Source: Blepharisma stoltei ATCC 30299
Lineage: Eukaryota; Protista; Ciliophora
Reading direction: 5' to 3'
NCBI GenBank assembly: GCA_965603825.1
Contig: CBFDEM010000006.1
Span: 62,001 to 126,000 of the forward strand
DNA length: 64,000 nt
Part shown: positions 208 through 63,846 of the stretch, one piece after another
Position numbering within the stretch: position 1 is the first letter of the stretch
Layout: the number at the start of each line of letters is the position of its first letter
The notes under the pieces: generated by a model
Databases searched by the model: none
Seen by the model: only the letters and a program-made list of their open reading frames with translations
What the model was told of the DNA's origin: nothing
Translations under genes and position numbers: made by a program

Positions 208-3200
208 ATGCTAAGTGTCTCCAAACAGCTTACTATTATCCTCACATTTCTAAAATGTTGCTTATCTCTTGATCCTGCTGACGTTGCTCTTGCCATAAAC
301 TCAGGTGGCGGCACTTATACCTCTACTTTTGGCTTTGTATACTCCCCAGACAGCTATTATACCACAGGCGGGCCATATGTGGATCCCTCATCTACCCCAA
401 TTGCTCGTACAAATAATGGAGATATGTACAAATCCCAAAGAGTATTTGATGGAACTTGAGGATATGACATCCCCGTTAGCCCTGATGGGACATATGTACT
501 TATTCTCCAATATGTTGAAACCTGATTTACCACTGCAAATGCAAGGGTTTTTACAATTAAAATAGGAGACTACACTGTCTTAAGCAATTTAGACCTATTC
601 GCTCTTTTTGGGAGAAATAATGCTCATGATATATTTATCGAATTTACACTTTCTGCTGGAAATGTTTATATTGGAGGGAATTTAATTTCTGGGGCATTTT
701 CTGCAGGAATTTTAAATTTTCGTATGATCCAAGTTATACAGGCTCCAGAAATATCAGGATTTATTTTGATAAAAGGGAATTGTGCTGTAGCAGACCATTG
801 TAATATGTGCTATAAGCAAAGATGTGCGACTTGTAATGAAGGAGATTTATCATGTGCAACCTGTATAGATAATGCCCATATTGTAGATGGAGATTGTCAA
901 TGCAACTCTAATGCTTATTGGGCTTATTCGACAAGAAGCTGTGAAAAATGTGATAATTTGTGTAATGTTTGTTCTGGGTCGGCAAATTTTTTATGCACCA
1001 CATGTGTAAGCCCAAATGTGCTAGTGTCAAGTGTCTGCTTGCGAGCGTGTCCATATGGGTTTGGGTCTTGTACAATAGTCTCAATGGCTGTTATTGAACA
1101 AAATTTTGCTAATTTATTTGTAGGGACTTATGGGATATTTCGTGTAGGATCAAATCCGAGTACTTTTTATTTTTTTAATAGCCCTGAAGCAGATGATCCA
1201 ATCCCAGCTAAAAGTAGAGGACTTTATTTTTATGGAGCCCAGTACCTTCAGACGTCATCAAGTATATATATTTCGCTTAATTTCTCAATTGGATTTTGGG
1301 TTTGGATACTATCAGGCTCTGGCGATATCATGGCAAATAGTCCAGGGGGTAAAATAACGATATCTGCACTTGGCGTAATGACTATTGTGCTAGAAAGCAG
1401 ATTTGAAGCGACTGCAACAATAACAACTGTAGCATTAAATCCATCGAATTCAAATTGAATTTACATTTCTTTTATAACTTCGTTTTCGCCATCAACTATA
1501 ACAACAACTATTGTCCCATATTTAAATAACTCTCCAAAAACTCCTACTACAATAAGCCAGTATATATACAGGGATGGAGCAAACAATGTAATAATCCTAG
1601 GAAAGAGCTCGTCCAGTACTTTCTTAGGATATATTTATTGATTCACACTATGAAATGTTGCTGTTTCAGATTTTAATACTCAATACTCAGATGAAATATG
1701 TGACCCAGGAGAAATATCTAATTGTCTTTGGACTTGTCCTTTGTCTCAATGGATGAATCATGCAACACCAACTAATTGCAATTCATGCTCGAATGGGTGT
1801 GTCAGAAGTATATCTTGCAATGTTTGTGATGATCCTCTTTGCAGCCAGTGCACTGGATTTTCAGGTGGACTTTGCACGCAGTGTGTTTCTAATGCATCAG
1901 GAGCTTCTTCTACTTGCACTTGTAATGCTGGCTATGTTCTTTCTTCTGATGGGTTTTCATGCTTACCCTGCTTTAGTGGATGCTCTTCCTGCTCGTCAAC
2001 ACAATATTACCAATGTTTAACTTGTGATTCGACGCATTATTTATTAAATGTATTATGTGATACACAATGCCCAAGCGGCTATAGCCAAAATTCAGGCACA
2101 AATAAATGTGATTTGACTAACAATTTGGTTATTGATTTAGAATTTGATGATTATATAGTGCTTGGCACTTTATCAGGATTTAATGTTGGAAACAGCAATA
2201 CAAATTCCTATCCGAATTTTGATACAAATGACTCTATTCCAGCAATTCACCGTGGATATTATTTTACTGGACAAAGTTATATGGGTGGGTCTATTGTATT
2301 TAGTCCTTATTTCTCAGTCATGCTATGAGTCAAAGCTATAGACCAAGGAGTTTTAATAGAAAAATTTGATGGAAGTGTTAAATATTTAGTAATAAAAATT
2401 GATAGCAGCGGATACCAAAATCTTAATATATTGCTCAAAGATGGATCATCATTAAATGCAATTAGTCCTCAGTATATCCTCTCCAATTGGCATTATTTAT
2501 CATTTTCTGGCTCGATTAATTCAGATGGGACTTATAGTTCTTATAGTTATATTGATTCATCTCTACAATTTACTGCTACTTCTACACCCAAGACATACTT
2601 AAGAGACAGTACTTCTGGAACTCTTCTGATTGGTGTTGACCATGCATCTACAACTGGTTTTAAAGGATTTCTATGAAATTTAAAAATTTATAATGACAAG
2701 ACATATGTAAATTCAGCATGAGTCTCTACTACTTGTACTGTAAATCCGTGCACAAGTTGCCCGGTTGGAAATTTCTGTCCTAGTTCTTGCTCATTGGCAA
2801 ATTATCCAGGCAGCACTTCTTGTGCTTCGTGCAAGAGTTCTTCATGCTCTTATGGATGCAGAAGCGATCTGACATGCCGACTTTGTAGAGAAAAAGAATG
2901 TTATTCTTGTATATCATTCTCAAATAAGTGCTTAAGCTGCATCACAAATGCAGGATTTGTAGGAGACTTATGTCAATGCAACCTAAACGCTTATTGAAAT
3001 GGGAATACAGAGACTTGTGACCTTTGCCACACTATCTGTACATCTTGCTCTGGACCTTCTTTTATAGAATGCATTCAATGTGGATCTTTCTTGCTTATGC
3101 TCTCGAATATTTGTTTAGAGTTTTGTCCTTCAGGATATACTATAAGTGGAGATCAATGTATATTATCGAATGAACTGGTTTTCAGCTTGAGGTTAAGTCA

Positions 3201-7782: not shown

Positions 7783-10700
7783 ATGAAGGCTTGTCTACGT
7801 CACCTTGCCTTAATTGTTCTAAGTTTATTGACTTGCTATTCACTTGACCCTTCAACTATTGTGATGGCTATCAACTCTGGAGGCTCAGCTTACACTTCTT
7901 TATATGGATTTTCATATATTGCTGATACTTATTCAACTGGAGGAAGTAATCATGTAATCACTGGCTCTACAATAGCTAACACCAAGGACGATTCTATGTA
8001 CTTATCAGAGCGATATGGCACAACTAACTGGGGATATAACCTTCCTCTCAGCACAGATGGGACATATGTTTTAATTCTCCAGTTCTGTGAAATCTATTTT
8101 ACGACTACAAATAGCAGAAAGTTCACAGTAAAAATTGGAAGCTATACTGTAGCCAATAACCTTGATTTAGTAGCTACTGCAGGACCATTAACAGCTTATG
8201 ATATATTCACAGAATTCACGCTTTCAAGTGGCACAGTTTCAATAGCAGGAAACGCGATAACAGGTGCTTATACAGGCGGAAATTTGATAGTTACTTTTAC
8301 TCAAGTTTTGCAAAATCCTCAGCTTGCAGGACTAATCATAGTAAGTGGAGACTGTAGAGTGGCTGATTACTGTAATATGTGCTATCAAGTAAGATGCATG
8401 GTCTGCAATGCCCCAGCTTTGTCTTGCACAACTTGCATTGCTAATGCTTCTCCTGTCAGTGGAGTGTGCCAATGTAATGCAGGATATTACTGGACGACGA
8501 CCACAAGAACGTGTGTTCCTTGTGATAATTTATGTATATCTTGTAGCTCAGATAATTTTATTTGTGCAACTTGTTCAGGCTCAAATGTATTAGTTTCAAG
8601 TGTTTGCTTAAGAGCTTGTCCATATGGATTTGGCACATCTTGTGCTTCAGTTTCAACAGCAGTTATAAACCAAAATTTTGCTGATTATTTTTACGGAGCA
8701 TATGGTTTATTTAGAACAGGGACAAGCTTAAGTAGTTATTATTTTTTTAATTCTCCTGAAACAGTAGATCCTATCCCAGCTAAAAGTCGAGGGCTTTATT
8801 TTTCTGGAGGCTCTTATCTTCAAACGACTGGGACTGTTTATATTTCTCTAAATTTTTCAATTGGGATGTGGGTTTGAATATTATCTGGCTCAGGAGATAT
8901 CTTGACAAATAGTTCTGGATATAAAATTAGGATATCTGCAAGCGGAGTAATGACAATTATATTAGAAAGTATAGCAGAAGCAACGACTACAGTAACAACT
9001 GCAGCACTTAACCCTTCAAATTCAGCCTGAGCTTACATTTCTTTTATAGTCTCATTTTCATCAGCCACAACTTCTACAACAATTGTCCCTTACCTCAATA
9101 ATTCTCCACAAGCATCTGTAACATCCAGTGGATACATATATAGAGACGCTATCAATAATTATTTAATCCTTGGAAAAAGCTCTTTAACTAATTTTTTAGG
9201 GTATATTTATCAATTTACTCTATGAAATGCAGCAGTTTCAAATTTTAACACTCAATACTCAGACCAAATATGTGGCACAGGGGCAGTCGCTAACTGTCTT
9301 TGGACATGCCCATTATCTCAGTGAATGAATGGGGCAACGCCTACAAATTGCAACTCATGCACAAATGGTTGTGTCAGAAATGTATCCTGCAATGTTTGTT
9401 TTGACCCCCTTTGTAGTGTTTGTACAGGATTCTTGACAGGCCTATGCACACAATGTGTTACTAATGCATCTGGGGCTCCTTCTACTTGTGCTTGCAATGC
9501 GGGATATATTCTCTCTTCTGATGGGTTTTCATGTGTTCCTTGTTATACTGGATGTGCTTCATGTACTGGGACTTCTTATTATCAGTGTAGCTCCTGTCTT
9601 TCAAGCTATTATTTATTAAAAACAATGTGCCTTACTTATTGTCCTTCTGGGTATACAGCTGATTCATCTGGCCATTTGTGTACTTTATCTACATCAAATC
9701 CTTTAAGTATTGCTCTCCAGAATTTGATACAATTGGACACAGTAAGCGGAGTTTCAGTAGGATCTTCAAATACAAATAAATATCCGACTTGGGAAACAAC
9801 TGATCCAATTCCTTCAATTTATAGAGGATATTATTTCTCAGGTAGTAATTATATGAGCCTTGCATCATTTACAATCAGTCCATATTTTTCGCTGCTAATA
9901 TGAATAAAGCCTCTAAGTGATGGATATTTATTTATGAAGTTTGATGGCACAACAAAGTATTCTTATGTTACTATATCATCTGGAATCTCTTCTATGAATA
10001 TTCTTCTTGCAGATTCCAATTTACTTAGTGTAAGTGGCTCTTCAAGCATTTTATCTGGATGGCATTATATTGCGTTTACAGGTGGCCTTTCATCTGGGAA
10101 TACTGTTATATCTCTATCAATTGATGGAACTTCTGTCTCTTCAACTACTTCTGCATCATCCTCTTATTACAAGGATCTTGGCACACTTTACATTGCGAAA
10201 GATACTACTGCGTCTGGAGGTTTTACTGGCTTTCTATGAAGTCTAAAACTTTACAATGACAATACGTATGCAGCTCAAGAATGGAAAACTTCAGGATGTC
10301 CCACCGGCTGTACTACTTGTCCTTCCGAATTGAAATGTCCAGACAGCTGCTCTTTTGGACAATTTTATTCAAGTTCTTGCACATCTTGTGTAGGCTCATG
10401 TCCTTATGGGTGCAGATCAACACTGACTTGCAGGCTTTGCAAAGATAAAGAATGTCTTGCGTGCACAACTTTTGATGGTCCTTGCACGTCCTGCATAACT
10501 AATGCAAGCATCTCAGGTACAACATGTGTTTGCAATAACAACGCTTTTTGGGAGCAAAGCTCAGATGGGTGTCAAATTTGTGATAATCTATGCAGCCAAT
10601 GCCAAACAAATAAATACTTTTTATGCTCATCATGTGGGACGTATTATCTTGTTTCAAATGTTTGTCTAAGAAGCTGCCCTTATGGGTTTACAAGTCCATG

Positions 10701-13700
10701 TGTGACAGTTACTTCACCTGTTATAGATGTAGCATTTAATGGAGATTTTCAAGGAACTTACTCTATTTTTACTACTGGAACAAGTGCAAGTTTTTATCAA
10801 TTTTTTAACTCACCAGAAACAGTTGATCCAATTCCTGCAAAACAAAGAGGGCTCTATTTTAACGGAAGCCAATATTTAATGTCGAACACTAATGTATATC
10901 TCTCACATAGTTTTGCTATGGGCCTCTGAATTTATGTGACAGCTACAGGAGATATTTTATCGAATTCCAGAATTATTGTTGATTCATCTGGCTCAATAAA
11001 AATACCGCTAGAGAGTCCATTAGAAGTAACTTCGTCTCAAACTCTATCAGGCACTTCTTTTGCAGTGTGAATATTTTTGTCATTTACTTCTTCATTTAAC
11101 AACCCTGCGATTACAACAACTTTAACAATATATAATAATAACAATCAGGTCGCCTCTTCAACTTATAATACTGTTATTTATAGAGATCAAACTAACCAAA
11201 AAATTAAAATTGGTGGCAGCTCAACTTCCTATTTTACTGGATTTATCTACAATTATAAGCTCTGAAATGTTGCAATATTTGATTTTTCGACACAATTAAA
11301 TGAAATTTGTGGCTCTGGATTATTAGCGTCCTGTTTATGGGCGTGCAATATCAATTATTGATGGAATGGAGCAGCATTTAAAAGCTGTGATACAGGCTGT
11401 GTCTTAGGCTGTACTAGAAATGGATCATGCAATATTTGTGATGACCCACTTTGTAGTGTATGTACTGGATTTGACGCAAATAAATGCACACAATGTGTTA
11501 CTAATGCATCTGGGGCTCCTTCTACTTGTGCTTGTAATGCTGGATATATTGTCTCTTCTGATGGGTTTTCATGCGTTCCTTGCTATACAGGATGTGGCTC
11601 ATGCACTGGGACTCTTTATTATCAGTGCAGCTCCTGCCTTTCAAGCTATTATTTATTAAAAACAATGTGCCTTACTTATTGTCCTTCTGGATATACAGCT
11701 GATTCATCTGGACATTCTTGTACTTTATCTACATCAAATCCTTTAAGTATTGCTCTCCAGAATTTGATACAATTGGACACAGTAAGCGGAGTTTCAGTAG
11801 GATCTTCAAATACAAATAAATATCCGACTTGGGAAACAACTGATCCCATTCCGTCGATTTATAGAGGATATTATTTCTCAGGTAGTAATTATATGAGCCT
11901 TGCATCATTTACAATTAGTCCATATTTTTCGCTGCTAATATGGATAAAGCCTCTAAGTGATGGATATTTATTTATGAAGTTTGATGGCACAACAAAGTAT
12001 TCTTATGTTACTATATCGTCTGGGATCCCTTCTATGAATATTCTTCTTGCAGATTCAAATTTACTTAGTGTAAGTGGCTCTTCAAGCATTTTATCTGGAT
12101 GGCATTATATTGCGTTTACAGGTGGCCTTTCATCTGGGAATACTGTTATATCTCTATCAATTGATGGAACTTCTGTCTCTTCAACTACTTCTGCATCATC
12201 CTCTTATTACAAGGATCTTGGCACACTTTACATTGCGAAAGATACTACTGCATCTGGAGGCTTTACTGGCTTCCTATGAAGTTTAAAACTTTACAATGAC
12301 AATACGTATGCAGCTCAAGAATGGAAAACTTCAGGATGTCCCACCGGCTGTACTACTTGTCCTTCCGAATTGAAATGTCCAGACAGCTGCCCTTTTGGAC
12401 AATTTTATTCAAGTTCGTGCACATCTTGTACAGGCTCATGCCCTTATGGGTGTAGATCAACACTGACTTGCAGACTTTGCAAAGATAAAGAATGTCTTGA
12501 ATGTACAGCTTTTGATGGTCCTTGCACGTCCTGCATAAATAATGCAAGTATCTCAGGCACAACATGTTTTTGCAATAATAACGCTTTTTGGGAACAAAGC
12601 TCAGATGGGTGTCAAATTTGTGATAATTTATGCAGCCAATGCCAAACAAATAAATATTTTTTATGTTCATCATGTGGAACTTATTATCTTGTTTCAAATG
12701 TTTGTCTAAGAAGTTGCCCTTATGGGTTTACAAGCCCATGCGTTACAGTTACATCTCCTGTTATAGATGTAAAGTTTAATGGAGACTTTCAAGGAATTTA
12801 CTCAATTTTCACTACAGGAATTAGTTCAAGCTCCTACCAATTCTTTAACACCCCTGAAACAGTTGATCCTATCCCTGCAAAACAAAGAGGGCTCTATTTT
12901 AAAGGAAGCCAATATTTAATATCAAATACCAATGTATATCTCTCACATAGTTTTGCTATGGGCCTCTGAATTTATGTGACAGCTACAGGAGATATTTTAT
13001 CGAATTCCAGAATTATTGTTGGTTCATCTGGCTCAATAAAAATACCGTTAGAGAGTCCATTAGAAGTAACTTCTTCAGAAACTTTATCGAGCCCTTCTTT
13101 TTCAATGTGAATTTACTTATCATTTACTTGCGTATTTAACAATCCTGCGATTACAACAACGTTGAAAGTATATAATAATAACAATCTGGTAGCTTCATCA
13201 ACTTATAATACTGTCATTTATAGAGATCAAACCAATCAAAACATTAAAATCGGCGGAAGTTCAGCTTCCTATTTTAAAGGCTTTATTTACAGCTATCAGC
13301 TCTGAAATGTTGCTATATTCGATTTCACAACACAATTAGATGAAATTTGTGGCTCAGGACTATTAGCAAATTGTTTATGGGCATGTGATATTAACGATTA
13401 TTTAGACTCAACATACAAAAATTGTGATACAGGCTGCAGTTTAGGATGTACAAGAAGCGGGTCATGCAATATTTGTAACGATCCTCTTTGTAGTGTATGT
13501 ACTAGTTTTGATGCAAATAAATGCACCACTTGTGTTTCTCATGCCCACAATACCCCATGTAGCTGTGATTCAGGCTATTCTTTATCTTCTGATGGCTTTT
13601 CTTGTGTACCCTGCTTTACTGGCTGTTCTTCATGTTCGTCATCACAATATTACCAATGTTCAGGTTGTGTTTCTACTTATTATTTATTAAATGTCCTATG

Positions 13701-16700: not shown

Positions 16701-18636
16701 TTCGAGTAAATTCTGCAATCTTTGTGAGAACCCAAAATGCACGTCATGTACTGATTTTACAGCAGACTCCTGCCTTGAATGTACTTCTGGGACTTCAAAC
16801 ATCACAAATTGCCAATGTGACTATGGTCTTGCTTGAAACTCAACCTCAGGAGCATGTGAGACTTGTCATCAATGGCAATTCAAAGCCAACGACTCCTGCA
16901 TTGACTGTCCTCCACTTTGTGCCCAATGTGATAGCCTAACTAAATGCACATGATGTATTAACAACGCTGTATTAAACTCTGGAAGCTGCAGCTGCTCTCC
17001 AGGATGGTTAGGAAATACAACTTGTGTATATATCCCTTTCAATGTTACCCTCACAGTGAATCTCAACAATACTCTTGTCCTAACTTTCAGCGATTTTCTA
17101 GTCACAAATTTGACCAGTGGCAATATTTATATAAAAATTCTTAACCAAACGGTCGAATTTTTCTCAGTCACTTATTTATCAAATAGCAGTTACCTTATAA
17201 CATGTGAATTTGGAGGCGGCATTAAAAAAGGCACAATAGTAAAAGTCTATTTTATAGATCCAAAAGAAATATTGTCAGTCTCTGGCGGCGTAATTCATGA
17301 CCAATACGTATCAGGGACTCTATATAAATCAATTAAAACTTCAGAAGAACAAGAAATCGCCCAAATCCAAAACCAAGTTTCTGCTGGGATAAAAGCCCTG
17401 GTTGGCTCAGGAGCTGTTTTAGCTATGCTTAATCCAAGTCCTTCTGGATTTTGGACAATGCTGAACACTATTCAGCTATTGGCGTATATCCCTTATGCAA
17501 ATTATCCTTTGACAGACAAAATAGTCGCATTTTTTGAAGCAATGAATGGCTTTAATTTTGTTCCTAACATATTTTCTTTATTTATAGATAAAAAACAAGG
17601 AAATTCTCCATATTATCAGGCAGAAAAATATGGATATGATAGCGATTTAGTTCTGCTAAATATAGGAAATGACGCTACAATATTATGTGTTATGATAGCG
17701 ATGATGCCTATAACCTTATATTTATCTAAATGCTCAGAGAGACTTATAGGGAAAAAATTAAAAAAGATTTATAATGAGTACAAGTTTGGGGTATTTTTGA
17801 GATTCTGAATATTAATTTATCTAGAAAGTGGATTTGCGGCTATTGTTGGAATTTTGAGTGCTAAAAGATCTGAAACTTATCCAGGTGCTGTTGAGTTTTC
17901 TAACCTTCTGATTTGTTGGGCTTTTATTGTGATGTTTATTTAGATATTCATAATTTTGACTCCAATGCTATTGGTGTATTCAAGCTATAAAAATTCCAAA
18001 AATATTTTATATAAGAGAAACAAAAAATGGTTAATACCTTGAAACTCTCTTTATTATGAGTTTAAAAACGATTTAGGGTTCATGAGCACACAATATTATA
18101 CACTATTTTTCACAAGACGGTTAATTTATATTGCAGTTCAAGTCTTTCTAAATGACTACCCTCAAAGCCAGCTAACAATAAATACAGTCTGTGCATTATG
18201 CGTAATTTCTATTTAGATGGCTCTATATGTTTTTGTCTACAAGCCTTTTGAAGACCCTGTGATTCAGATTACCAACTTGATCACTGAATGTGGAATTTCC
18301 ATTACCTTTATAATGATTTGTCCATATTTTTTTGACTTAACATCAACTGCGCTTGATAATATGGACAGCTGTGTAATGATTTTTGTTATTTTTATTATGG
18401 CAGCACAAACAGCTGGACCTTTAATAAACTCAATTAAAGAGTTATATGAGCTTGCTAAAAGAAGCATGACAAAAGAAATACGCTCGAATCCAATAAAAAT
18501 ATTGAAAAACCCGAGAAGAATTGATCTAAATAACATGAGTAATTTCTTTGAGGATGAAACTCCAGCTATTATTGAATTTGCAGATGCAGAAAATAGGAAT
18601 TTTAATCAAGAAATACCAAATCAAACAAATAAATAA
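7783..18636 (+). CDS. Paralog 2: malectin + 8 Cys-rich/LamG-like modules + multi-pass TM domain, ~3607 aa (introns 17929-17943 and 18202-18216)
   Basis: All family-matching ORFs from 7783 to 18217 are in one frame and broken only by TGA. Signal peptide MKACLRHLALIVLSLLTCYS; malectin motif YLSERY...WGYNLP; TAA at 18634-18636. Confidence 0.9.
9445..13525 (+). repeat. Intragenic tandem duplication, two copies of ~2040 bp (680 aa, two modules each)
   Basis: Near-identical sequence at an offset of 2040 (9625 vs 11665; 10330 vs 12370). Confidence 0.93.
17929..17943 (+). other. 15-nt intron GTGATGTTTATTTAG (GTG donor)
   Basis: Homologous position, A at position 10, removes an in-frame TAG. Confidence 0.83.
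18202..18216 (+). other. 15-nt intron GTAATTTCTATTTAG
   Basis: Homologous position, A at position 10. Confidence 0.87.
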
Positions 18637-44301: not shown

Positions 44302-44332
44302 TCCTGCTACTGAAAGGACTTTTGCTCATTTA

Positions 44333-49800: not shown

Positions 49801-50729
49801 CTAAATACCCCATAAATTCCTAAAAAATAATCAGCAAAGTTTTGGCTTATAATTGCTGTTGAAACTGAAGCGCAAGATGTGCCAAATCCATATGGGCAAG
49901 CTCTTAAGCAAACACTTGAGACTAATACATTTGAGCCTGAACAAGTTGCACAAATAAAATTATCTGAGCTACAAGATATACATAAATTATCACAAGCAAC
50001 ACACGTTCTTGCTGTTGTCACCCAGTAATATCCTGCATTACACTGGCATACTCCACTGACAGGAGTAGCATTAGCAATGCAAATTGTGCAAGACAAAGCT
50101 GGCGTATTGCATACCATGCATCTTGCTTGATAGCACATATTACAGTAATCAGCCACGCTGCAGTCTCCACTTACTATGATTAGTCCTGAAAGTTGAGGAT
50201 TTTGCAAAACTTGGTTAAAAGTAACGATCAATTTGTCACCTGTATAAGCACCTGTTATCGCGCTTCCGGCTATTGAAACTGTGCCACTTGAAAGCGTGAA
50301 TTCTGTGAATATATCATAAGCTGTTAAAGCTCCTGCAGTAGCTACTAAATCAAGGTTATTGGCTACAACATAGCTTCCGATTTTCACTGTAAACTTTCTG
50401 GTATTTGTAGTCGTAAATAAAATATCGCAGAACTGGAGAATTAGCACATAAGTCCCATCTGTGCTGAGAGGAAGGCTATATCCCCAGCTAGTTTTGGCGT
50501 ATCGCTCAGACAAGTACATAGAATCGTCCTTGGTGTTAGCTACAGAGCCACCGACTACATAAATAGTCCCTCCAGTTGAATAAGTATCGGCAGAATATGA
50601 AAACCCATAGAAGGAAGTGTAAGCTGAGCCTCCAGAGTTGATAGCCATCACAATAGTTGAAGGGTCAAGTGAATAGCAAGTCAATAAATTTAGAACAATT
50701 AAGGCAAGATGACGTAGACAAGCCTCCAT
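44474..50729 (-). pseudogene. Paralog 9: chimera of a paralog-2-type 5' part (50729-46820) and a paralog-11-type 3' part (46820-44474), with frameshifts
   Basis: MEACLRHLAL.. start matches 7783. One 2040-bp unit is absent. -1 indels at ~47782, ~46050 and ~45070; garbled tract 47640-47718; 20-nt deletion at ~45035; introns 45143-45157 and 44891-44905. Confidence 0.78.
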
Positions 50730-51127: not shown

Positions 51128-51129
51128 AT

Positions 51130-52890
51130 AGTATCTTCTGACGTTTGCTTCAAAGTTTTAAAGAGATCTTCTGATGAGGAAATAAAAAACTTCAAGTGGG
51201 ATAAAGTTAGTTATAGTATGCTTTCTGCTACTATTATAATAACGTAAAATAGAGAAGAGCACTATTTATATCTCATGTGCCTGAGTTCTTATCTGCTAAG
51301 TAGCTATTATATAAGTTTCTATGCAAATATTTATTTAGATTCTCTACAGTACCTCGAGTTCTGGGGTTTTATGGAGAACTTGTAATATATTGAATATTAT
51401 ATCTAATGCAAGAAACATTTAACTCTGTGTTGCAGAATTCTACTTTATCAAACCTACGTCAGATTTTACAGACTGATAATGGTGGAGATAGAGCCAAATT
51501 AAAATCCTTTAAAACTTCTTCTGCTGTTTTATTCCCCAAGCAATATGCTCAAATGTACTTTGAGAAATGATCAACTATAGACAATATATAAGGAACTTTT
51601 GAATAGTTTAATAATTCATCGCATAATTTAAATATATCCATTTGAAATCTCTCCATTGGCTTCTTGGATTCAATTTGTATCTTGATTGGATAGTTAGGTC
51701 TTGGACCCACTCAACAGTGCAGATTAAGCTGCTTGCAGTATAATTTCGACAGTCATATGTAATTTTTGGCCAATATATTTTGCTTTGTTTAATGCATAAT
51801 TGCATATCTCTTGAAGTAATATGATTATGCTTGTCTCTAACATGAGCAAGTTCCAATATTTACAAATTCCCCAAATAAATGGAATAACAACTTTTACAGT
51901 AATTCAGATGAGTCTTGATTCTGTCAAATCTAACTTTTCCCCAATTAACAATTCATATTTTTTATGCACTCGGTGTTTAAAGTTTTTTTTTTCCAGAAAC
52001 TCTTTCCACAATCCTGTTTTCAAGGATGCCTGGAGGATAATATCTTTCAGCGTCGCCTCTTTCTTTAGATAATAAAAATATACATGATCTAAGCATTTGC
52101 TAATATTGTGAAGTGCTGGAAATAACTCAAATTCTCTTTCAATTTCTTTTTGCTTGCTTATTATATCTTTTTGAACTGAGAATTTTTTTGTAAACATCTA
52201 TTTCTAAATAATTTTCTTGAGCTAATTTAATTTTTTCGTCTCAGGAATAAACCCTTCTGATATTAGAACATCATAGTGATTATTATGAGAGAATCACACA
52301 TTTAAAATTGAAACTGAAGAAAATAATATAGGGCTGAGGCATTTCATCTTAATAAATTCTAATGGCAATTCCGAATAATTCTGAAGCACAGCATAACTCT
52401 ATACCACTGCCTTAAAAGCTATAGGTTTTAATTTGTTTACATAGTAAATTCGCACATCTCTTCAGTTTTAAGGCCATCTTCGAGAATTTCTTTATACCTT
52501 TCTTCATTCTTTTCAAAATAGTCAGCTACTAAATTGCGTATATCTCTATGAGATTCTTGAAAACCTGTTAAATGGCACGATATAGCTCTAAACATGCAAT
52601 TTCCATCTCCTTTCATTGGAATAATAACTAAATCTTTTCTATTTGGAGATTTAACTGGCATTTTTTCTTCATCTATGTCTTGGGAATTATTGAAACATTT
52701 GATGGAAAAGGTTCATCTTCAAGGTAATCTGAAAATTTATCTTCTGAAGTATCAGAAGGCTTAGCATCAGTATTTGATAATTGATATTCATCATCACTAA
52801 TTCTAAAATCAGTAAATTATAATTAACTCAGGATCTGAAGCGGGGGATGATAATTGCGCCTTTATCGATATTGGCGCAAATATATCCTAA
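51130..52890 (-). mobile_element. Decayed element encoding an OTU-type cysteine protease + HHCC zinc finger + retroviral-type DDE integrase (Ginger/Polinton-like relic)
   Basis: Minus strand, across frameshifts. OTU: GDGNCMFRAIS (~52610-52578), GSGIELCCASELFGIAIRIY, WFSHNNHYDVL (~52270). HHCC: LAHVRDKHNH..IYWPKITYDCRNYTASSLIC. Integrase core: PMERFQMD..YILSIVDHFSKYIWAYCLGNKTAEEV; ILQTDNGG (locally inverted); EFCN..SSP*NPRTRGTVENLN; YNSRKHTITNFIPLEVF. Confidence 0.82.
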
Positions 52891-53454: not shown

Positions 53455-56382
53455 ATGAAAGTTCGCCTGAGTTATGTTGCCTTATTTTCTCTGAATGTGT
53501 TAGTAGTTTACTCTCTTGATGCTTCAACTGTTGTTTTCGCTATCAAAGCAGGAGGCTCATCTCACATGTCCTCTTTCGGGTTTTCATACTCTGATGATAT
53601 CTATTATCCAGCAGGAACCTATATTTATACTACAACAAGCCACATAGCTCATACAGAAAATGAATTTGTTTACCAATCTGAAAGATGATATATAGGGATT
53701 TGAGGATATGACCTTCCTATTAGCGCTGATGGAACATACGTACTTATTCTTCAATTTGCTGAGATATATTATTCAATTGCCAATGCCAGAGTATGAAATG
53801 TCAAAATTGGAGATTATATTGCTTATAATAATTTAGACGTAGTTGGGACTGTAGGAGCAATGACTGCTTATGATATTTTTATACCTTTTACACTATCAAG
53901 TGGAACCATTTCAATTGCTGGAAATACAATTACTGGAGCTTATTCAGCAGGAAAATTGGTTATTAGATTTTACCCAGTTAAAAATAATCCAACACTCTCA
54001 GGAATAATTTTGGTGAGAGGTGATTGCAGTGTGGCTGATTATTGTAATATGTGCTATCAGCCAAGATGCTTGGAATGCAATACGGCTGATTTAAATTGCA
54101 AAACCTGTATTGATAATGCTAGTTCTGTTTCTGGAGTATGCCAATGTAATGCAAACTCTATTTGGGTTGCCTCTTCAAGAAAATGCGTTATTTGTGACAA
54201 ATTATGCACATCATGTAGTTCAGAAAATGTTTGTGCAAGTTGCTCAACAAATGTGCTGATTTCAAATGTTTGCTTAAGAGCGTGCCCTTATGGATTTGGC
54301 ACATCTTGTGCTTCAGTTTCAACAGCAGTTATTGATCAAAATTTTGCTGATTATTTTTATGGGGATTATGGATTATTTCAAACAGGGACAAGTTCAAGCA
54401 GCTATTATTTTTTTAATACTCCTGAAACAGTAGACCCCATCCCTTCAAAAAACCGAGGGCTTTATTTTTCTGGAGGCTCATATCTTCAAACAACTTCAAT
54501 TGTTTATATTTCACTTAATTTTTCAATTGGAATGTGAGTTTGAATATTATCTGGTTCTAGAGATATCTTGACAAATAGTTCTGGATATAAAATAACTGTA
54601 TCTGCAAGTGGAGTTTTGACAATTATACTAGAGGATAAGGTGCAAGCTATGACCACAGTAACGACAGCTGCACTTAACCCTTCTAATTCAGCGTGAGTTT
54701 ATATTTCTTTTATTGTTTCATTTTCATCATCAACAATTTCTACAACAGTTTCTCCTTATCTAAACAATTCTCCACAAACATCTACAACATCAAGTGGATA
54801 CATATATAGAGACGCTGTCGATAATTATATAATTCTCGGGAAAAGCTCTTTGAGCAATTTTTTGGGATATATTTATCAATTTACTCTATGGAATGTAGCT
54901 GTTTCAAATTTTAATGCCCAATACTCAGACCAAATATGTGGCACAGGGGCAGTTGATAATTGTCTTTGAACTTGTCCTCTATCTCAATGAATGAACGGAG
55001 TAATACCTACAAATTGTAACTCGTGCGGAAATGGTTGTGTCAGAAGTGTATCTTGCAATGTGTGTGATGATCCTCTTTGCAGTGTTTGTACAGGGTTCTT
55101 AGCTGGTTTATGCACACAATGCATTTCTAATGCGTCTGGAACTCCTTGTGCTTGCAATATTGGCTATTATTGAGATTTAAACAGTGATAAATGCATTCCA
55201 TGTGATTATAGCTGTAAAAATTGTACATCATCAACTTCTGGAGACTGCATTGTTTGTGCGCCTGGGTTTTATATGTATTTAGGATGGTGCATTTCTGAGT
55301 GTCCAGATGGATTTGTAGAAATCGGGTCAATGTGTGTTGTAAAAGATCCTTTCATCTTTTACCTATCTTTTGATACTCTGGAAGGAGTTCTTTATGATAA
55401 GCAAAGCAAAATTCCAGCTCTAACTGGAAACAGCACAGCTTTTTACCCAGATTATGATGACTTTGATCCAATAGCTGCTTTATACAGAGGGTTTTATTTT
55501 AACGGAGTGAACTCGCTTATGCATTTACCTATTTATCCAGGCTATAGCAGCCCAGTTCTTAGCTTTGGCTATTCTTTCACTTTTTCTATATGAATAAATA
55601 CTGAGGATGGTTTTGGAACTATTGTCTCAAAGCAAGATTTGCTTTGCAATCCAATTTTCTCACTACAATTAGCAGCTGGAGTTTTAATAGTTGCGTTAAA
55701 CTTTAAGAGTTCTGGAGTGAATTCCTTCTATTATTTGCAAAATCTTAAATCTTACGAATGAAATCATATTGCATTCACAGCAGAACACACAGCTCTGAAG
55801 CAGACAAAAATGGCATTCTATTTAAACGGAATTACAGATCGTCAAAGTGATATAGGATCTGACTATTTTAAAGACACCAAAACAGATATTAGTTTTACAT
55901 TAGGGGCAGAAAAAGATGTATCTGGCTATAAAAATTATTTTAATGGATTTATTTATGATATCAAGGGCTATAATTCAATAAAAAGCATATCATCACTGGC
56001 ATTATCAGCTGCACAGTGCACAGAAGCCTGCAACGCATGCCTTACAAATGGGGCCTGCATTCCTAACTGTTTAATTAATCAATACTGGATTGGCCCAGAG
56101 TATAATAAATGCTCCAAGTGTAGCAGTGAGTGCCATAGTTGTAGAGATTCCAGTAAATTTTGCAATCTTTGTGCTAGCCAAAAGTGTGCATCCTGCTATA
56201 ATTATACAGAAGAGTCCTGCCTTAAATGTATTTCTGGTACTTCAAACACTACAAACTGCTAATGTGACTATGATCTTGCTTGGAACTCAAGCTCAGTAAT
56301 GTGTGAAACTTGCCATCAATGGCAATTTAAAGCAAATGATTCTTGCTATGATTGTCCTCCTCTTTGTGCTCAATGCGATAGT
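53455..56382 (+). pseudogene. Paralog 10, 5' part (malectin + 2 modules); premature TAA at 56260-56262; cut at the inversion junction
   Basis: Single frame, closest to paralog 7. Ends ...CAQCDS at 56382; the continuation lies on the minus strand from 61454. Confidence 0.83.
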
Positions 56383-58635
56383 TTCAAAACCATCCTCAGT
56401 ATTTATTCATATAGAAAAAGTGAAAGAATAGCCAAAGCTAAGAACTGGGCTGCTATAGCCTGGATAAATAGGTAAATGCATAAGTGAGTTCAATCCGTTA
56501 AAATAAAACCCTCTGTATAAAGCAGCTATTGGATCAAAGTCATCATAATCTGGGTAAAAAGCTGTGCTGTTTCCAGTTAGTGCTGGAATTTTGCTTTGCT
56601 TATCTAAAACAGCTCCTTCCAGAGTATCAAAAGATAGATAGAAGATGAAAGGATCATTTTCAACGCACGTTGGCCCACTTTCTATAAATCCATCGGGGCA
56701 CTTAGAAATGCACCATCCTAAATACATATAAAAACCAGATGCGCAAGCAATGCAATCCCCTGGAGATGATGATGTACAAGTTGTGCATGAATAATCGCAT
56801 TGAGCGCAATTTGCGGCTGTTGAATCTCAGTAATAGCCAATATTGCAAGCGCAGGAAATTCCAGGGTTATTAGAAATGCATTTTTTGCATTCTCCAACCA
56901 ATGGATCTAAGTAATAGCCAGCATTGCAAGCGCAAGGGGCTCCAGACGCATTAGTAACGCATTTTATGCATAAGCCTGCTAAAAATCCTGTACAGATACT
57001 ACAAAGAGTATCATCGCAAACATTGCATGATAAATTTCTGACACAACCTTTTGAGCATGAGTTACAATTTGTAGGGTTTCCTCCATTGATTCACTGGTTA
57101 ATTCCGCATTCCCAAAGACAGTTAGCTCTTGCTCCACTGCCACATATTTGGTCTGAGTATTGAGTATTAAAATTTGAAACAGCTACATTTCATAGAGTAA
57201 AGTGATAAATATATCCCAAAAAAGTACCTGATCGTTTTTCCCCAAGAAGTAATACATTATTGCAAGTATCTCTGAATATGTACCCGCTTGACGTTTTAGA
57301 TGCTTGCGGAGAATTGTTAAGGTAAGAGACAATTGTTGTTGAAACTGTTGATGATGAAAATGAAGTAACAAAAGAAAAATAAAGTCAAGTTGAACGTGGA
57401 GGGCTAAGTGATGAAGTTGTTACCCTAATCTTACCTTCGTTTTTATCTTCTAATAAAATTGTCATAGCTCCAATTACAGAAATACTTATTGTATATCCAA
57501 AACTATTTGAGAAGATATCTCCTAAGCTTGTGGATATAAAAATCCACATCCCAATTGAAAAATTAAATGAAATACAAACAGATGAAGTCGTTTCAAGATA
57601 TGAGTATCAAGAAAAATAAAGCCCTCGGTTTTTTACAGGGATGGGGTCGACTATTTCAGGAGTATTGAAAAAGTTGTAGCTGCTTGAACTTGACCCTGTT
57701 TTAAACAATCCATAAGCCCCATAAAAATAATCAGCAAAATTTTGATCAATAACTGGTGTTGAAACTGTAGCACAAGGTGAGCCAAATCCATAAGGGCACC
57801 CTCTTAAGCAAACATTTGAAACTAATACATTAGCACCTACGCAAGTTGCGCAAATAAAATCAACAGAGCATGATGCACACAATTTGTCACAAGTAACGCA
57901 TTTTCTTGAAGACGCCACCCAAATATTGCCTGTTTTACAATCGCATACTCCGGAAGAATTTTTAGTCGCATTATTTATGCAAGTAGTGCATTTCCAAGTA
58001 GCCAAATTACATACTGAGCATTTTGCTTGATAGCACATATTACAATTATCAGCCACACTACAGTCTCCACTGACCAAAATTATGCCAGAAAGTTTTGGCT
58101 TATCAGTAATTACATAAAGTCTAATAACCAGTTTGCCACCTGAATAAGCTCCATTTATTAGATTTCCATTAATTGAAATTGAGTTACTTGATAGTATAAA
58201 AGGTATAAAAATATCGTAAGCAGTCAATCCTCCTACAGTAGCCACTAAATCTAAATGATTTGCAACAAGGTAGTCTCCAACTTGTATAGTAAACACTCTG
58301 CTATTGGCACTTGAAAAAGAGATTTCGGCAAATTGGAGAATAAGAACATATTTCCCATCTGTGCTAATAGGGATATCATATCCTCAAGTTACTGAGTCTG
58401 ATCTTTCAGATAGATAAATATTTTCATCTAATGTATGGGCCACATGTGCGCCTGCGACAGCATTATTACTTAATCCTGATGTATAGTAGACATCACTAGA
58501 GTATGAAAAGCCAAAAGAGGATGTATAAGCTGAACCTCCTGCATTTATAGCTAAAACAACATCTGATGCATCAAGCGAAAAAATGTTGAATAAACTCAGA
58601 GCAACCAAGGCAACATGAAGCAGGCGAACTTTCAT
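56378..58635 (-). pseudogene. Paralog 11, 5' part (malectin + module 1 + half of the last module), inverted
   Basis: ATG at 58635; frame open through TGA to ...WINTEDGFET at the junction; extra Cys-rich unit at ~56830-56920. Confidence 0.83.
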
Positions 58636-59444
58636 TTTATTTATTATAGTTAAACAAATTTAGGATATATGACGTAGCTTAAATAGCACAAACTTATAAT
58701 AATATTTATGGAATTATTAATCTCAGTAATAAATACTCTTTATGCTGATAATCGATTTATATCAACTTTTCTCCTATTTGTACCTATTTTGTAGGAATTT
58801 ATTTATTCTTTATAAACTTATACATAATTGGAAAAATTTTCTTCACACTTCTCCTAGGCTTGGCATATTTTATGCAAAACTTTTTATTACTTCTTTTTGC
58901 TTAATTATTCTTGAATTTCATATTTTCCAATCAAGCATTTAGCCATAGGGATTTGTGTCTTCCTGTCTAATATGTAGAAGTTATATATTTTGATTAACAA
59001 ATCAACACATATAATTTATATACAAGATTATCACTAAAACTCAAATTTTCTAACTGCTTTTGCAATTAAATAGCTTAATCTCTGATGTACAGAGTAAATT
59101 TTTGTATTTTTGCTATTAAAGGTCTTATCTTAAATGGCGAATAAATGCAAATAAAGTTGTATTTTAACTTTGCCAAGCTTTGAAAATGATATGGAATTGT
59201 AAATTCTATTATACATTCATTCAATAAGAAAGAAGGAGATGAATTACCCTTAGAAATATTTTAGCCGGTCACTAAGAGAGTATTTTATTATAAGATTTTA
59301 GTAATATAAATTAGTTAAGAAACAAAAAGGAATAATAAATATTCTGATAGTTCATATGCTCGTCAAATTTATTGAAGTTAGATTTAATATACAAGTATTG
59401 ATTAATACAATTAGAATCCTATACTAGTATAATTTTTATTACTT

Positions 59445-59660
59445 TTCCTACATGTTGGTTTGCAAAGTGCTTCCAAATGCATTGTTCATGCATTTATATT
59501 AATTCTTTTCTCGATTTAGGTATCTTTCCTTCTGCATAGATTTCTTTGTTCATGTTTCTTTTAGCAATATGATAAACTTAATTGAGGAAAATAAAAGGCC
59601 AAACTGTTTGAACTATCATAAGAGAAACAATAAAATTTATAATTAAATTGTCAATAATAT
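59445..59660 (-). pseudogene. Old degraded orphan 3' end of a family gene
   Basis: Reverse complement gives IIDNLIINFIVSLMIVQTV..VYHIAKRNMNKEIYAEGKIP, with indels. Confidence 0.72.
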
Positions 59661-59772
59661 AATAAGAAAATTAGCCTTGCTCATCACTAATGGTATTAAG
59701 TAATTATGAATTAATAAAAGAAGGAATTCTATGTAAAACATAATTATTTTATTATAAATGCTAACATATGTC

Positions 59773-61454
59773 TTATTTAGCTTCAATTCTAATGCCATTT
59801 TTAAAGTTTTTTCTGCAATTTATTTTGCTAGGCTCTTCCGAAGCTACTGTAAAAGCGTTGATAATTCCCCTTTTCTCATTAGGTATCTTTTCTTCTGGAT
59901 AAATTTCTTTATTCATGCTTCTTTTAGCAACATAATAAATTTCTCTTATGGAATTTACCACAGGCCCTATCGTCTGCACTGCCATCAGAGACATAACAAA
60001 ATACATAATTAAATTGTCCGTAAAATTAATCCAGGTTCTACCTAGATCAAACAAATATAGACTAAGGAGCGGAAAAATAATAAAATTCACAAACTCAGTA
60101 ATTAAATTTGTTACCTGAATAACACAGTTATCAAAAGGCCGATAAATAATTAAAAATAAAACAATCTAAGTAAAGCATACACATAATGATGAAGCTGCAT
60201 TTATTGTAAGTTGGCTTCGAGGAAAGCCATTTAAAAAAACTTGAGTAATAATAAAAACTGAGCGCCTCGCAAAATATAGTGTATAATATTGTGTGCTCAT
60301 AAATCCTTTATTATTCTTGAACTCGTAATATAATGAACTTCAATTAGCAAATCATTTCCTTTATGTCTTCTATTTATAATTTTTCTTAAGATTTTTGAAA
60401 GCTAAAATATGCATGAAGGAAAGGAGTAATTGCTATAAGTATCTAAATTATCATTACAATGAATAATCAGCAAAGAGCATAGTTAGTGAGTCTAAGTGGA
60501 TTTTCTAATGCTTCACTATATTCTGTACTCAAAATTCCAATTATAGATGCAAAACCAATTTCAAGATAGCATACAATCCAAAACCGTAAAAAAGTTCCAA
60601 ATTTATACTCCCTGAGTGTGTTTTTTAATTTCTTTCCAACGAATCTATGAGAGCATTTAGAAAAGGAATAAACAATAGGGAGCACAAATATAAAACTACA
60701 TAAAACAGTTATATCATTTCCAACATTTACAAGTATCAATGAGCTATCGTATCCATATTTTCTCGCCTGATAATAAGGAATATTACCTTTATCTTCTTCT
60801 ATAAATAATAAAAATAAATTTGGAACTAAATTGAAATCGCTCATTGACTTTAAAAACGCAGAAATTTTGTCTGTAATAGGTAAGCTTGCATAAGGTATGT
60901 AGGAAATAAATTGAATAGTATTCAGCATTGTTCATAGTGCTGAAGGGTTTGGATTGAGCATTGCTAAAGCTACACTTGATCCAGCTAAAGCTTTTACCCC
61001 AGAAGAAACTTGATTTTGAATTTGAGCCACTTCTTGCTCTTCTGAAGTCATTACAGATTCATATAAAGAGCCTGATAAATACTCTTCATGAATTACACCT
61101 CCAGAGATAGATGTAATACTAGTCGAATTTATAAAATTTACTGTAATAGTAGTGCCCTCTGAAATCTTTCCATCAAAATTGCATGATATTAAAAACTCTT
61201 TGCTTGAAATTTGAGAAATTGATCATGAAGGTATTGTATTATTATGGATTTTTATCAAAATTTGTTCATTTCTCAAACCCTCTTTTAAGATGTCGCTGAA
61301 GCTCAAAATCAAGGTATTATTTTTGCTAACAGCAAGGCTGACATTAAAGGGGATGATTGTGCATGCAATTGTTCCTGCATATCCAGGAGAGCAAATACAA
61401 TTTCCAGAGTTCAGTACTGCATTGCTAATGCATCATGTGCATTTATATTCACTA
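59773..61454 (-). pseudogene. Paralog 10, 3' part (TM domain), inverted; introns 60443-60457 and 60166-60180
   Basis: Begins (T)AGT GAA TAT AAA TGC, the expected continuation of 56382 (compare 37213-37230). Clustered +4 nt of insertions at 60355-60400. Confidence 0.83.
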
Positions 61455-61489
61455 GATTATGGGTAAGCTTTTAGAGTGCCCTTATTTGA

Positions 61490-63846
61490 GTGCCTTCTTT
61501 TATTTGCAAAGTCTTGAATCTTATGAATGAAATCACATTGCATTCACAGTTGAGCATACAAATCTGAAGCAGACAAAAATGGCATTCTATTTAAATGGAA
61601 TTACAGATCATCAAAGTGATATAGGATCTGACTATTTTAAAGCCACCAAAACAGATATGACTTTTACATTAGGGGCAGAAAAAGATGTATCTGGCTATAA
61701 AAATTATTTTAATGGATTTATTTATGATATTAAGGGGCACAACTCAGTAAAAAGCATATCATCACTTGTACTGCCCGCAGCGCAGTGCACAGAAGCCTGC
61801 AAAGCATGCTTTACAAATGGGATCTGTATTCCTAACTGTTTAATTAGCCAATACTGGATTGGCCCAGAGTACAATAAATGCTCCAAGTGCAGCAGTGAGT
61901 GCCTTAGTTGTAGGGATTCAAGTGCTTTTTGTAATCTTTGTGCTAATCAAAAATGTGCATCCTGTTATGATTTTGAAGCAGAGTCCTGCCTTAAATGCGT
62001 TTCTGGTACTTCAAACACGGCAAATTGTCAATGTGACTATGGTCTTGCCTGGAACTCAAGTTCAGGAATGTGTGCAACTTGCCATCAATGGCAATTCAAA
62101 GAAAACGATTCTTGCTATGATTGTCCTCCTCTTTGTGCTCAATGTGATAGTGAAAATAAATGCACATGGTGCATTAACAATGCTGTGCTGAGCTCTGGAG
62201 GCTGCATTTGCTCTCCTGGATATACAGGAATATCTAATTGCACAATCATCCCCTTTAATGTTACTCTCGTCATCAACCAAAATAATACCCTGATTTTGAC
62301 CTTCAGTGATGCCTTAAAGCAGGATTTACAAAACGAGCAACTTTTGGTCAAAATAAATAATCATACGATTCCATCATGGTCAATTTCTAAAATATCAAGC
62401 ACACAATGTTTAGTATCGTGTGACTTTGATGGAAAGATATCAGAGGGCACTAATTTTACAGTCCATTTTATAAATTCAACAAGTATTGCATCTATCTCTG
62501 GAGGTTTACTTTATGAAGAGTATTTATCAGGCTCTTTATATGAGTCTGTAATGACTTCAGAAGAGCAAGAAGTGGCTCAAATTCAAAAAGCAAGTCTCTT
62601 CTGGGGTAAAAGCTTTAGCTGGGTTAAGTGTAGCTTTAGCAATGCTCAATCCAAATCCTTCAGCATTATGAACTATGCTGAACACCGTTCAGTTTTTTTC
62701 CTACATACCCTATGCAAGATACCCTATAACAGATAAAGTTTCTGCGTTTTTGAAGTCAATGAATGACTTCAATTTTGTTCCAAACTTGTTTTTACTGTTT
62801 ATTGATGAAAACCAAAGTAATCCTCCTTATTATGGGCGAGAAAATTTGGATATGAAAGCTCATTGATACTTGTAAATATTGGAAATGATATAACTGTTCT
62901 TTGCGGTGTTATAATAGTAATCCCTGTAGTCTATTACTTTTCTAAATGCTCACAAAGATTCATTGGAAAGAAATTAAAAAAAGTACTTAGAGAGTATAAA
63001 TTTGGTACATTTTTACGATTTTGGATTGTATGTTATCTTGAAGTTGGTTTTACCTCCATAATTGGGATTTTGAGTACAGAAGATTATGGAAGATTAGAAA
63101 ATCCACTTAGATTGACTAATTATCTACTTTGCTGATTTTTTATTGTAATGATAATTTAGATACTTATTGCAATAACTCCTTTTATTCATGCATATTTTAG
63201 TTTCAAAAATTCAAGCAAAATTATAAATAGAAAAAATAGGAAATGGTTTGCAAATTGAAGTTCCTTGTATTACGAATTCAAGAATAATAAAGGATTTATG
63301 AGCACGCAATATTATACCCTATATTTTACAAGGCGCTTGATTTTTATTATTACTCAAGTGTTTTTAAATGATTTTCCTCAAAGTCAGCTCACAATAAATG
63401 CAGTATCATCTTTATGTGTAAGCTTTATATAGATTGCTCTATTCTTAATTTTTTATCGTCCTTTTGATAACTTTGTTATTCAGGCAACAAATTTAATTAC
63501 TGAGTTTGGAATTTTTGCTATTTTCACGCTACTTACTCCTTATTTTTTTGATCTAAGTCCAGCCGTGACTAATATTATGGACAATATAATTATGCATTCT
63601 GTGATCTCAGTAATGCTAGTGCAAGCAGTTGGGCCTCTAATAAATTCTATAAAAGAAGTTTATTATGTTGCTAAAAGAAGTATGAGTAAAGAAATTTATC
63701 AAGAAAAAAAGATTGCTAAAAATGAGAAAATGGATGCTATAAATACTTGGACAATACCTTCGGAGCCACCATGCCAAACAAGTTGCAGAATAATCAGCAG
63801 TAAAAACGATATTAGCATAGAAAGAAAATATGATTTATATCAATAA
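61490..63846 (+). pseudogene. Probable paralog 11, 3' part (rest of last module + TM domain); introns 63145-63159 and 63418-63432
   Basis: No ATG or malectin; starts mid-LamG about 100 nt downstream of where 56378-58635 ends. +1 indel at ~62588 and -1 indel at ~62834; TAA at 63844-63846. Confidence 0.78.

Follow-up and report, generated by a model that had tools for sequence, protein, structure and literature searches.

Organization of the malectin gene array

A 64,000-nucleotide stretch of macronuclear DNA from the ciliate Blepharisma stoltei ATCC 30299 (contig CBFDEM010000006.1, or C6, forward-strand positions 62001-126000; hereafter, the window) carries a tandem array of genes for large membrane proteins tipped by a malectin domain. 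Family homology spans 88.3% of the window; malectin heads and membrane tails number 10 each and amount to 11 gene-equivalents, which agrees with the ~90% coverage and ~11 paralogs claimed in an earlier note made from the DNA letters. The window genes were searched piece by piece, full-length analyses were performed on the public protein records, and the joined gene models were compared both with the window and with the fetched proteins. Genome-wide counts refer to the assembly of 64 contigs (41.46 Mb). Copies g1, g2, g3, and g8 are intact, and g4, g6, g7, the g9/g10 chimera, and two genes severed by one inversion are broken (Table 1). The status of g5 is uncertain because its second intron is 17 nucleotides (nt) in length instead of the usual 15 or 16 nt. 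This intron contains one extra AT repeat unit; it may be defective, may be spliced despite its rare size, or may reflect a slip in the assembly.

In B. stoltei, UGA specifies tryptophan and introns mostly are 15 and 16 bp (PMC9942806). Translation of the window with this code yielded six open reading frames (ORFs) of 2031, 3398, 1322, 1308, 1316, and 1324 codons, whereas the longest ORF with the standard code was ≤417 codons; the reassignment of UGA proposed previously thus was borne out. The standard code and a code in which UAR is read as glutamine were rejected as neither yields coherent genes. Public records of B. stoltei contain proteins encoded in the window, including CAG9312389.1 and CAG9312390.1. 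The long family ORFs each stop at an in-frame TAG within the membrane region. This triplet forms the 3′ end of a 15-nt phase-0 intron (GT..AG; position 10 is A). Another 15-nt phase-0 intron is located ~270 nt downstream. When both introns were cut out, the register matched exactly that of intronless paralogs on contig 61 (C61), and the spliced models of g1, g2, and g7, retranslated with UGA as tryptophan, were 100% the same as the public proteins P0167, P0182, and P0181, respectively. Moreover, a probable RNA contig begins at position 18217, immediately after intron 2 of g2, with a 12-letter loose end that is the end of the upstream exon. Read-through of the TAG codons, each of which closes a 15-nt segment with the intron features described above, was rejected because intron removal restores the C61 register and because one junction was seen spliced. 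Overall, RNA contigs were sparse and pointed to transcription at a low level, with that one intron junction observed. Splicing of g3 and g8 is presumed, since their public models terminate at the TAG of intron 1. The introns at 22951 (g3) and 39689 (g8) are phase 0 with an in-frame TAG, and their retention would produce a clean truncation that removes the last five helices; regulated or unannotated splicing is a possible explanation for the truncated models.

Pairwise DNA identity between copies is ≤94%, and therefore the locus is a true array and not a set of duplicated assembly copies. Mis-assembly of one or two genes, the objection raised in the earlier note, was rejected on this identity together with domain-specific divergence and the private lesions in each copy. 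Copies arise by tandem duplication and are lost by deletion, frameshift, and inversion: tandem copies, broken copies, relics, and an inversion are all present, as expected for the birth-and-death arrangement that had been suggested. The junctions of the inversion both map to g7, one at g7 37214-37217 with no loss and the other at 36448/36550. That the inversion is an assembly error is unlikely because the separated halves bear their own stops and frameshifts. In g7 a 106-nt deletion near 38488 takes out the acceptor of intron 2 and shortens the membrane domain, and the tail of g9/g10 shares 94% identity with positions 61487-63996. The array runs past the end of the window with one further gene that encodes 3606 amino acids (aa; P0166). 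Neither malectin nor a LamG unit was found in the 10 kb upstream of the window. A 507-codon ORF located ~2.8 kb before the window (L046:5728-7248, minus strand) lacks a long ectodomain and distantly matched the membrane-domain profile (E 1e-10).

A degraded mobile-element relic in the array comprises an OTU-like protease (OTU E 7e-7) upstream of an integrase zinc finger (H2C2, E 0.003) and core (rve, E 0.017). The relic is present as a single copy in the macronuclear assembly and sits at the point at which gene orientation diverges.

Table 1. Family genes, introns, and other features of the array (window positions)
Feature	Position	Strand	Remarks
g1, intact, 2233 aa	208..6939	+	signal peptide, malectin ~277-780, 4 LamG units, Ig-like domain, membrane domain from 5698
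g1 introns	6286-6300, 6559-6573	+	spliced model = P0167 = CAG9312389.1
g2, intact, 3607 aa, 8 LamG units	7783..18636	+	= P0182 = CAG9312390.1, annotated MLEC_3
g2 introns	17929-17943, 18202-18216	+	intron 2 junction in probable RNA contig
g3, intact if spliced, 1526 aa, 2 LamG units	19024..23634	+	public model P0171
g3 introns	22951-22965, 23224-23238	+	sparse RNA contigs along gene; junction not seen among them
g4, headless relic	23814..25861	+	last Cys-rich block, Ig-like domain, frameshifted membrane domain
g5, 2 LamG units, status uncertain	26028..30607	+	intron 1 29922-29936; intron 2 17 nt, 30195-30211
g6, malectin head, without membrane domain	30938..33740	+	frameshift from 32-nt deletion near 32224
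g7, 1406 aa, 2 LamG units	34281..38761	+	= P0181 = CAG9312403.1, MLEC_4; intron 1 38211-38225
g8, intact if spliced, 1526 aa, 2 LamG units	39012..43622	-	introns 39675-39689, 39402-39416
Isolated fragment, g2-like C-terminal tail	44064..44302	-	homology
g9/g10, single frameshifted chimeric pseudogene	44519..50729	-	g2-like head and stalk, internal deletions
Mobile-element relic, degraded: OTU protease and integrase (H2C2, rve)	51372..52736	-	outside family
g11, head half of g7-like gene, cut by inversion	53455..56381	+	nonsense codon 56260-56262; public model P0164, 935 aa
Inverted segment, ~5.07 kb	56382..61454	.	splits two tandem genes
g12, malectin head and stalk half, within inversion	56378..58635	-	homology
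Small relic of last membrane helix and tail	59414..59658	-	homology
g13, frameshifted tail half, belongs to g11	59797..61454	-	homology
Frameshifted tail half, belongs to g12	61486..63789	+	homology

Malectin tip, stalk, and membrane domain

The tip of the proteins matched the malectin profile PF11721 over its full length (model positions 2-163) with an E-value of 5e-33 and 114.7 bits compared to a cut-off of 23. All 10 heads in the window exceeded this cut-off, and the malectin assignment in the earlier note thereby was upheld. Among solved proteins, animal endoplasmic reticulum (ER) malectin is closest to the tip (Xenopus malectin, E 6e-23); a malectin tree provided no resolution between an ER-type and a bacterial origin of the tip. 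The sugar-contact residues of malectin are Y67, Y89, Y116, F117, and D186 (PMC7783096). These positions were placed on the tips with the ER malectin of B. stoltei itself as reference. All five residues are retained in two of the three ER-type malectins in the genome, but in no receptor tip in the alignment. The D186 equivalent is aspartate only in g7 and g12 among the window copies, and the Y67 loop of the receptor tips carries indels. An aromatic residue usually is retained at the Y89, Y116, and F117 positions with varying identity, and the equivalents of E87/R88 and E114 mostly are retained. The relationship with ER malectin raises the alternative that the proteins are sensors of glycoproteins in the secretory pathway or vacuole that derive from ER malectin and convert glucosylated N-glycans into Ca2+ release, which also would suit the internal location that FLC proteins, discussed below, can adopt. 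However, the genome retains its three ER-type malectins, two with an entire set of contact residues, the receptor tips have lost the conserved ER site and diverge from one another, the C-termini of g1, g2, and g8 possess no di-lysine retrieval signal, and stalks as long as these (1100-3200 aa) typically belong to surface proteins. An internal sensor is a distinctly improbable explanation.

The distribution of amino acid differences within the tip was assessed in the four closest paralogs. Among positions ≤3 residues from the contact sites 51% differ, compared to 14% elsewhere in the domain, and this clustering was significant in a circular-shift test (p 0.006; p 0.036 without the indel-rich loop). 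Hand-drawn loop limits gave 61% difference vs. 10-14% in every other region, but these limits were set after the alignment had been viewed and thus the symmetric ±3-residue test is fairer. Similarly, the ratio of nonsynonymous to synonymous differences (pN/pS) was 0.9-1.1 in the contact loops and 0.27-0.30 elsewhere. Fisher tests gave p 2e-5 over four independent pairs and p 0.003 when only the intact pair g3-g8 was compared, and the contrast persisted when the indel-rich loop was excluded. The calculations show that, at the level of sequence, purifying selection acts on the scaffold of the malectin domain as well as on the stalk and membrane domain, but leaves the sugar-contact loops free to change. 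The diversified glycan recognition that had been claimed is favored in that amino acid change is concentrated around the five contact positions, although positive selection is not proven. A second hypervariable patch with 75% pairwise difference between close paralogs is located in the membrane-proximal LamG unit (g3 residues 796-803, approximately window positions 21409-21432). Tandem amplification that is mostly neutral, in which one or two genes are functional and the remainder decay, would account for the breakage of at least six of the 11 copies and for the mobile-element relic and inversion that the array holds. Nevertheless, pN/pS of 0.27-0.30 outside the loops applies even in the closest copies, including the intact g3-g8 pair, and malectin-tipped relatives have survived on two other contigs, which make this account the least credible of those considered.

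The stalk that follows the tip has a period of 340-360 aa which corresponds to a Cys-rich linker and a LamG unit. The LamG3 profile PF13385 matched 68 of 110 stalk units (best E 3e-15). A LamG unit was modeled with a pLDDT of 92 as a ConA/LamG beta-sandwich fold whose best structural match is domain 4 of the arabinanase AbnA (Z 18.5, rmsd 2.4 over 177 residues), a domain that was solved with an arabino-oligosaccharide. Window genes contain 2-8 LamG units, and these fall into positional classes: g2 and the next gene beyond the window (P0166) have the order A-B-A'-B-A'-C-D-E, compared to A-C-D-E in g1, A-E in g3, and E alone in a gene at C6:289k. Computational comparison of the genes shows that stalks have lengthened or shortened in frame as entire units of ~340 aa were gained or lost. 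A more distant gene on contig C2 possesses eight units in the same order as g2, and therefore the short stalks are explained most simply by in-frame deletion.

The C-terminal region was modeled by AF2 with a pLDDT of 91 and pTM of 0.82 as an Ig-like domain of 100 aa, nearest to SbsC (Z 10.8), followed by a helical bundle. The membrane domain most likely consists of nine helices, of which eight span the membrane and one is a short hairpin helix, and the signal peptide, loop charges, and helix list point to nine predicted crossings with the C-terminus inside. Thus, the domain order given in the earlier note was correct (malectin E 5e-33; LamG3 in 68 of 110 units), but its count of 7-8 transmembrane segments requires revision and the Ig-like domain before the membrane part had not been named. 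The model superimposed on fungal proteins with TRP_N and PF06011 domains with a TM-score of 0.69 over 385 residues, both sides being predicted models. Thirteen of 64 homologs matched PF06011 weakly (best 1.5e-6), and a paralog on contig 43 (C43) that matches the family profile at E 9e-54 exceeds the PF06011 cut-off. The ML-like TRP_N profile PF14558 produced no match in the 64 family members, and direct Pfam, PDB-sequence, and Foldseek searches with the membrane domain yielded nothing significant, with no Foldseek match under E 0.001. Based on the weak homolog matches, the C43 paralog, and the shared predicted fold, the membrane domain very probably is a remote FLC/Pkd2 homolog that lies below the formal family cut-off. 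Accordingly, the resemblance to PF06011 noted previously is sustained by predicted fold and by profile links to paralogs over the cut-off, but not by the window copies, which fall under it. Comparison with seven-transmembrane proteins gave Z 8-9 for microbial rhodopsins and Z ~8 for class C GPCRs (rmsd 4-5), values within helical-bundle noise (~13). No match to G-alpha (PF00503) over the cut-off was found genome-wide in a search that lacked a eukaryotic positive control; 16 weak partial matches in short ORFs of ~90-210 aa probably are small GTPases. The suggestion of a GPCR-like domain is not supported by these comparisons. Three buried polar residues of the membrane domain, R257, E338, and R358, are invariant in 64 homologs. 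Pkd2 of Schizosaccharomyces pombe similarly comprises an Ig-like domain and nine helices (bioRxiv 2022.08.11.503631) and lets Ca2+ through on stretch (PMC9727806).

Relatives of the family and placement of the malectin tip

A profile of the Ig-like and membrane domains produced 92 matches in the genome which represent roughly 80 genes, most with the stalk and membrane domain without malectin. Loci outside the window mostly were seen as 3.5-kb flanks or as public proteins. Approximately 33 intronless genes with LamG/Cys units and an FLC-like domain, but no malectin, extend over about 12-293 kb of the 298-kb contig C61. The membrane-domain homolog of Stentor coeruleus (OMJ90959) also has no malectin, and LamG-stalk homologs in gene-dense eukaryotic metagenome contigs include none with malectin. 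Searches for malectin-tipped homologs outside B. stoltei, which were word-seeded and length-limited, returned bacterial malectin proteins or generic Cys-rich repeats and nothing else. In the membrane-domain tree the three malectin-tipped proteins that it includes form one clade (support 99) that is nested in the B. stoltei expansion. As far as can be read from sequences, the comparison shows computationally that malectin was added N-terminally to an older ciliate family with Cys-rich/LamG, Ig-like, and FLC/Pkd2-like parts. Thus, the homolog count suggested in the earlier note returned a chassis that is not new, but is a large heterotrich-type family in which only the malectin tip is special.

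The genome contains 26 malectin genes: three ER-type, two divergent single-pass, and 16 and 5 of receptor type. The 16 genes are on or beside FLC/Pkd2-like chassis (C6, C63, and C2). The other five (C57, C3, and C10) lie upstream of REJ domains in polycystin-1-like proteins. One C57 gene that was read fully encodes the same malectin, two homologous LamG units, REJ, and membrane helices; a GPS-like Cys/HFT motif was recognized by eye, with no Pfam GPS match. By homology, one tip module is common to two receptor-type chassis. The REJ-chassis malectin loci are L043:1-7176 (C57), L044:3-4712 (C3), and C10:197-199k. The C57 genes have LamG units of the window family, and the C3 and C10 genes constitute a distinct malectin clade with no LamG unit. 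The divergent single-pass malectins, L004 (C15) and L015 (C47), are without most of the canonical contact residues. On a metagenome contig (L040:13870-21971) a pair of genes with LamG and TRP-like domains flanks a TIG/PA14/REJ/GPS gene, and thus both receptor chassis are adjacent in another organism.

Full-text literature searches revealed no description of the malectin-LamG-FLC combination, of its two-chassis distribution, or of the variable binding loops, and databases label the family proteins MLEC_n or TNFR-Cys. The combination so far is seen in one genome. The earlier note likewise knew of no description of this architecture as a family.

Candidate function and comparison with known systems

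At roughly even chances, the array encodes a lineage-specific, tandemly amplified, and diversifying family of glycan sensors coupled to a Pkd2-like domain. The proteins would be located in the plasma membrane or that of the food vacuole, their malectin tips facing outward, and the tip of each paralog would recognize its own glycan, carried by prey, microbes, or other cells. Glycan binding, or tension on the stalk, may be relayed through the Ig-like domain to the Pkd2-like domain, which might produce a Ca2+ signal by analogy with the effect of stretch on S. pombe Pkd2. A bolder version, in which ~21 diversifying tips on two unrelated Ca2+-linked chassis form a unicellular pattern-recognition repertoire and glycan binding opens the channel, is tentative and has the balance of probability against it.

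Several points weigh against the glycan-sensor interpretation. More than half of the window copies (at least six of 11) are broken, and the RNA data are sparse contigs from runs of a single study that were guessed to be RNA. As the Y67 loop and D186 mostly are not conserved, some tips may not bind sugar. The pN/pS of the contact loops is not significantly >1 (p 0.7-0.8), and relaxed constraint on surface loops explains their variation as well as positive selection does. PF06011 did not match the window pieces or P0167. Furthermore, FLC-family proteins often are internal, as in the Cryptococcus vacuole (PMC9600462).

The loop ratio of ~1 and no higher also is compatible with a tethered mechanosensor in which malectin and LamG units anchor the protein to the cell's own coat, to mucus, or to the substrate, and force is reported by the Pkd2-like domain. 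The reach of the protein then would depend on the length of its stalk, and loop variation would reflect relaxed constraint. The activation of Pkd2 by stretch (PMC9727806) and the possession of the same stalk and membrane domain by most of the ~80 relatives without malectin accord with this alternative. Nevertheless, change is concentrated at separate sugar-contact loops instead of in all loops, and a single self ligand would need no variety of tips; a mechanosensor is rather unlikely. A further alternative links the family to mating, either as the receptor for the N-glycosylated gamone 1, for which no receptor is known (PMC10892320), or as mate-recognition proteins analogous to MTA/MTB of Tetrahymena, since ciliate mating-type proteins are Cys-rich and multi-pass (PMC7786109). 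However, slight activity is left in deglycosylated gamone 1, and its glycan is simple, invariant, and not thought to bear specificity (PMC10892320), which weakens the connection with gamone 1 drawn in the earlier note. Moreover, two mating types need no 16 divergent tips. A role in mating is very improbable.

The molecular recognition of prey and microbes by surface sugars in free-living protists is, to our knowledge, little understood, and we know of no ligand for an FLC/Pkd2-type protein. The family provides small, expressible lectin domains that vary naturally at the binding site and are attached to a domain that may be Ca2+-permeable, in a ciliate that can be cultivated, and both questions become testable through it. 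If correct, the repertoire interpretation would allow Blepharisma to distinguish prey, parasites, or kin via glycans, and the FLC/Pkd2 fold would gain its first mechanism of gating by an extracellular ligand.

The family was compared with known systems that share its parts. Animal ER malectin (PF11721, CBM57) has the full domain, and its E87/R88 and E114 mostly have equivalents in the tips. In contrast to this small, single-pass type I protein, the window proteins are 1526-3607 aa and multi-pass with malectin in tip position, the Y67 loop and D186 mostly are replaced, and contact residues differ between paralogs. Plant malectin receptor-like kinases (CrRLK1L and LRR-malectin RLKs) also are expanded receptor families with malectin-type ectodomains, whereas the Blepharisma proteins are multi-pass, possess no kinase, and have a single malectin nearer to the animal ER type (ANXUR1 E 2e-4); the two groups of receptors are of independent origin. 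Tetrahymena MTA/MTB and Paramecium mtA likewise are large surface proteins that combine furin-like Cys-rich repeats with a multi-pass C-terminus and act in recognition, but they differ in that they are described with five predicted helices and with neither malectin nor LamG. The malectin-less heterotrich-type proteins (the C61 array, Stentor OMJ90959, and the metagenome proteins) have the same Ig-like and membrane domains, with 33-40% identity in B. stoltei. Most share the stalk units. The proteins of this group start with a Cys-rich block followed by a LamG unit, and have been auto-annotated only as TNFR-Cys or EGF-like. Fungal FLC proteins and S. pombe Pkd2 (PF06011 with PF14558) similarly have an extracellular Ig-like domain directly on a domain of ~9 helices with a cytoplasmic tail. 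The Blepharisma family differs by an additional ectodomain of 1100-3200 aa with malectin and LamG units, an Ig-like domain that resembles Big_5/SbsC and not the ML-like TRP_N, about 80 genes in B. stoltei vs. 2-4, and window copies that are under the Pfam cut-off.

DGF-1 of Trypanosoma cruzi possesses a signal peptide, position-specific tandem modules, an Ig-like hat, and 7-9 helices (bioRxiv 2026.07.27.741050), and resembles the Blepharisma proteins in each of these features as well as in forming a large multigene family. This shared plan, the score of 0.88 for DGF-1_C as a look-alike in features, and the fast gene turnover and distal hypervariability of the array suit a variable surface coat or adhesin in which the membrane domain mainly is an anchor and the exposed tip diversifies against docking parasites, viruses, or predators. 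However, RNA contigs are sparse, which is unlike an abundant coat protein (weak evidence), and the invariance of R257, E338, and R358 in 64 homologs exceeds the needs of an anchor. The DGF-1 C-terminal profile PF11040 produced no family match in a search without a positive control. A coat function is considered unlikely. DGF-1 modules are seven fixed beta-helices, compared to 1-8 LamG/Cys units with a lectin tip in Blepharisma. The family shows the Ig-plus-nine-helix unit in the role of a modular receptor-type chassis in ciliates, which is parallel to DGF-1 in trypanosomes. All parts of the proteins are known domains, and their general layout resembles that of DGF-1 and of Pkd2.

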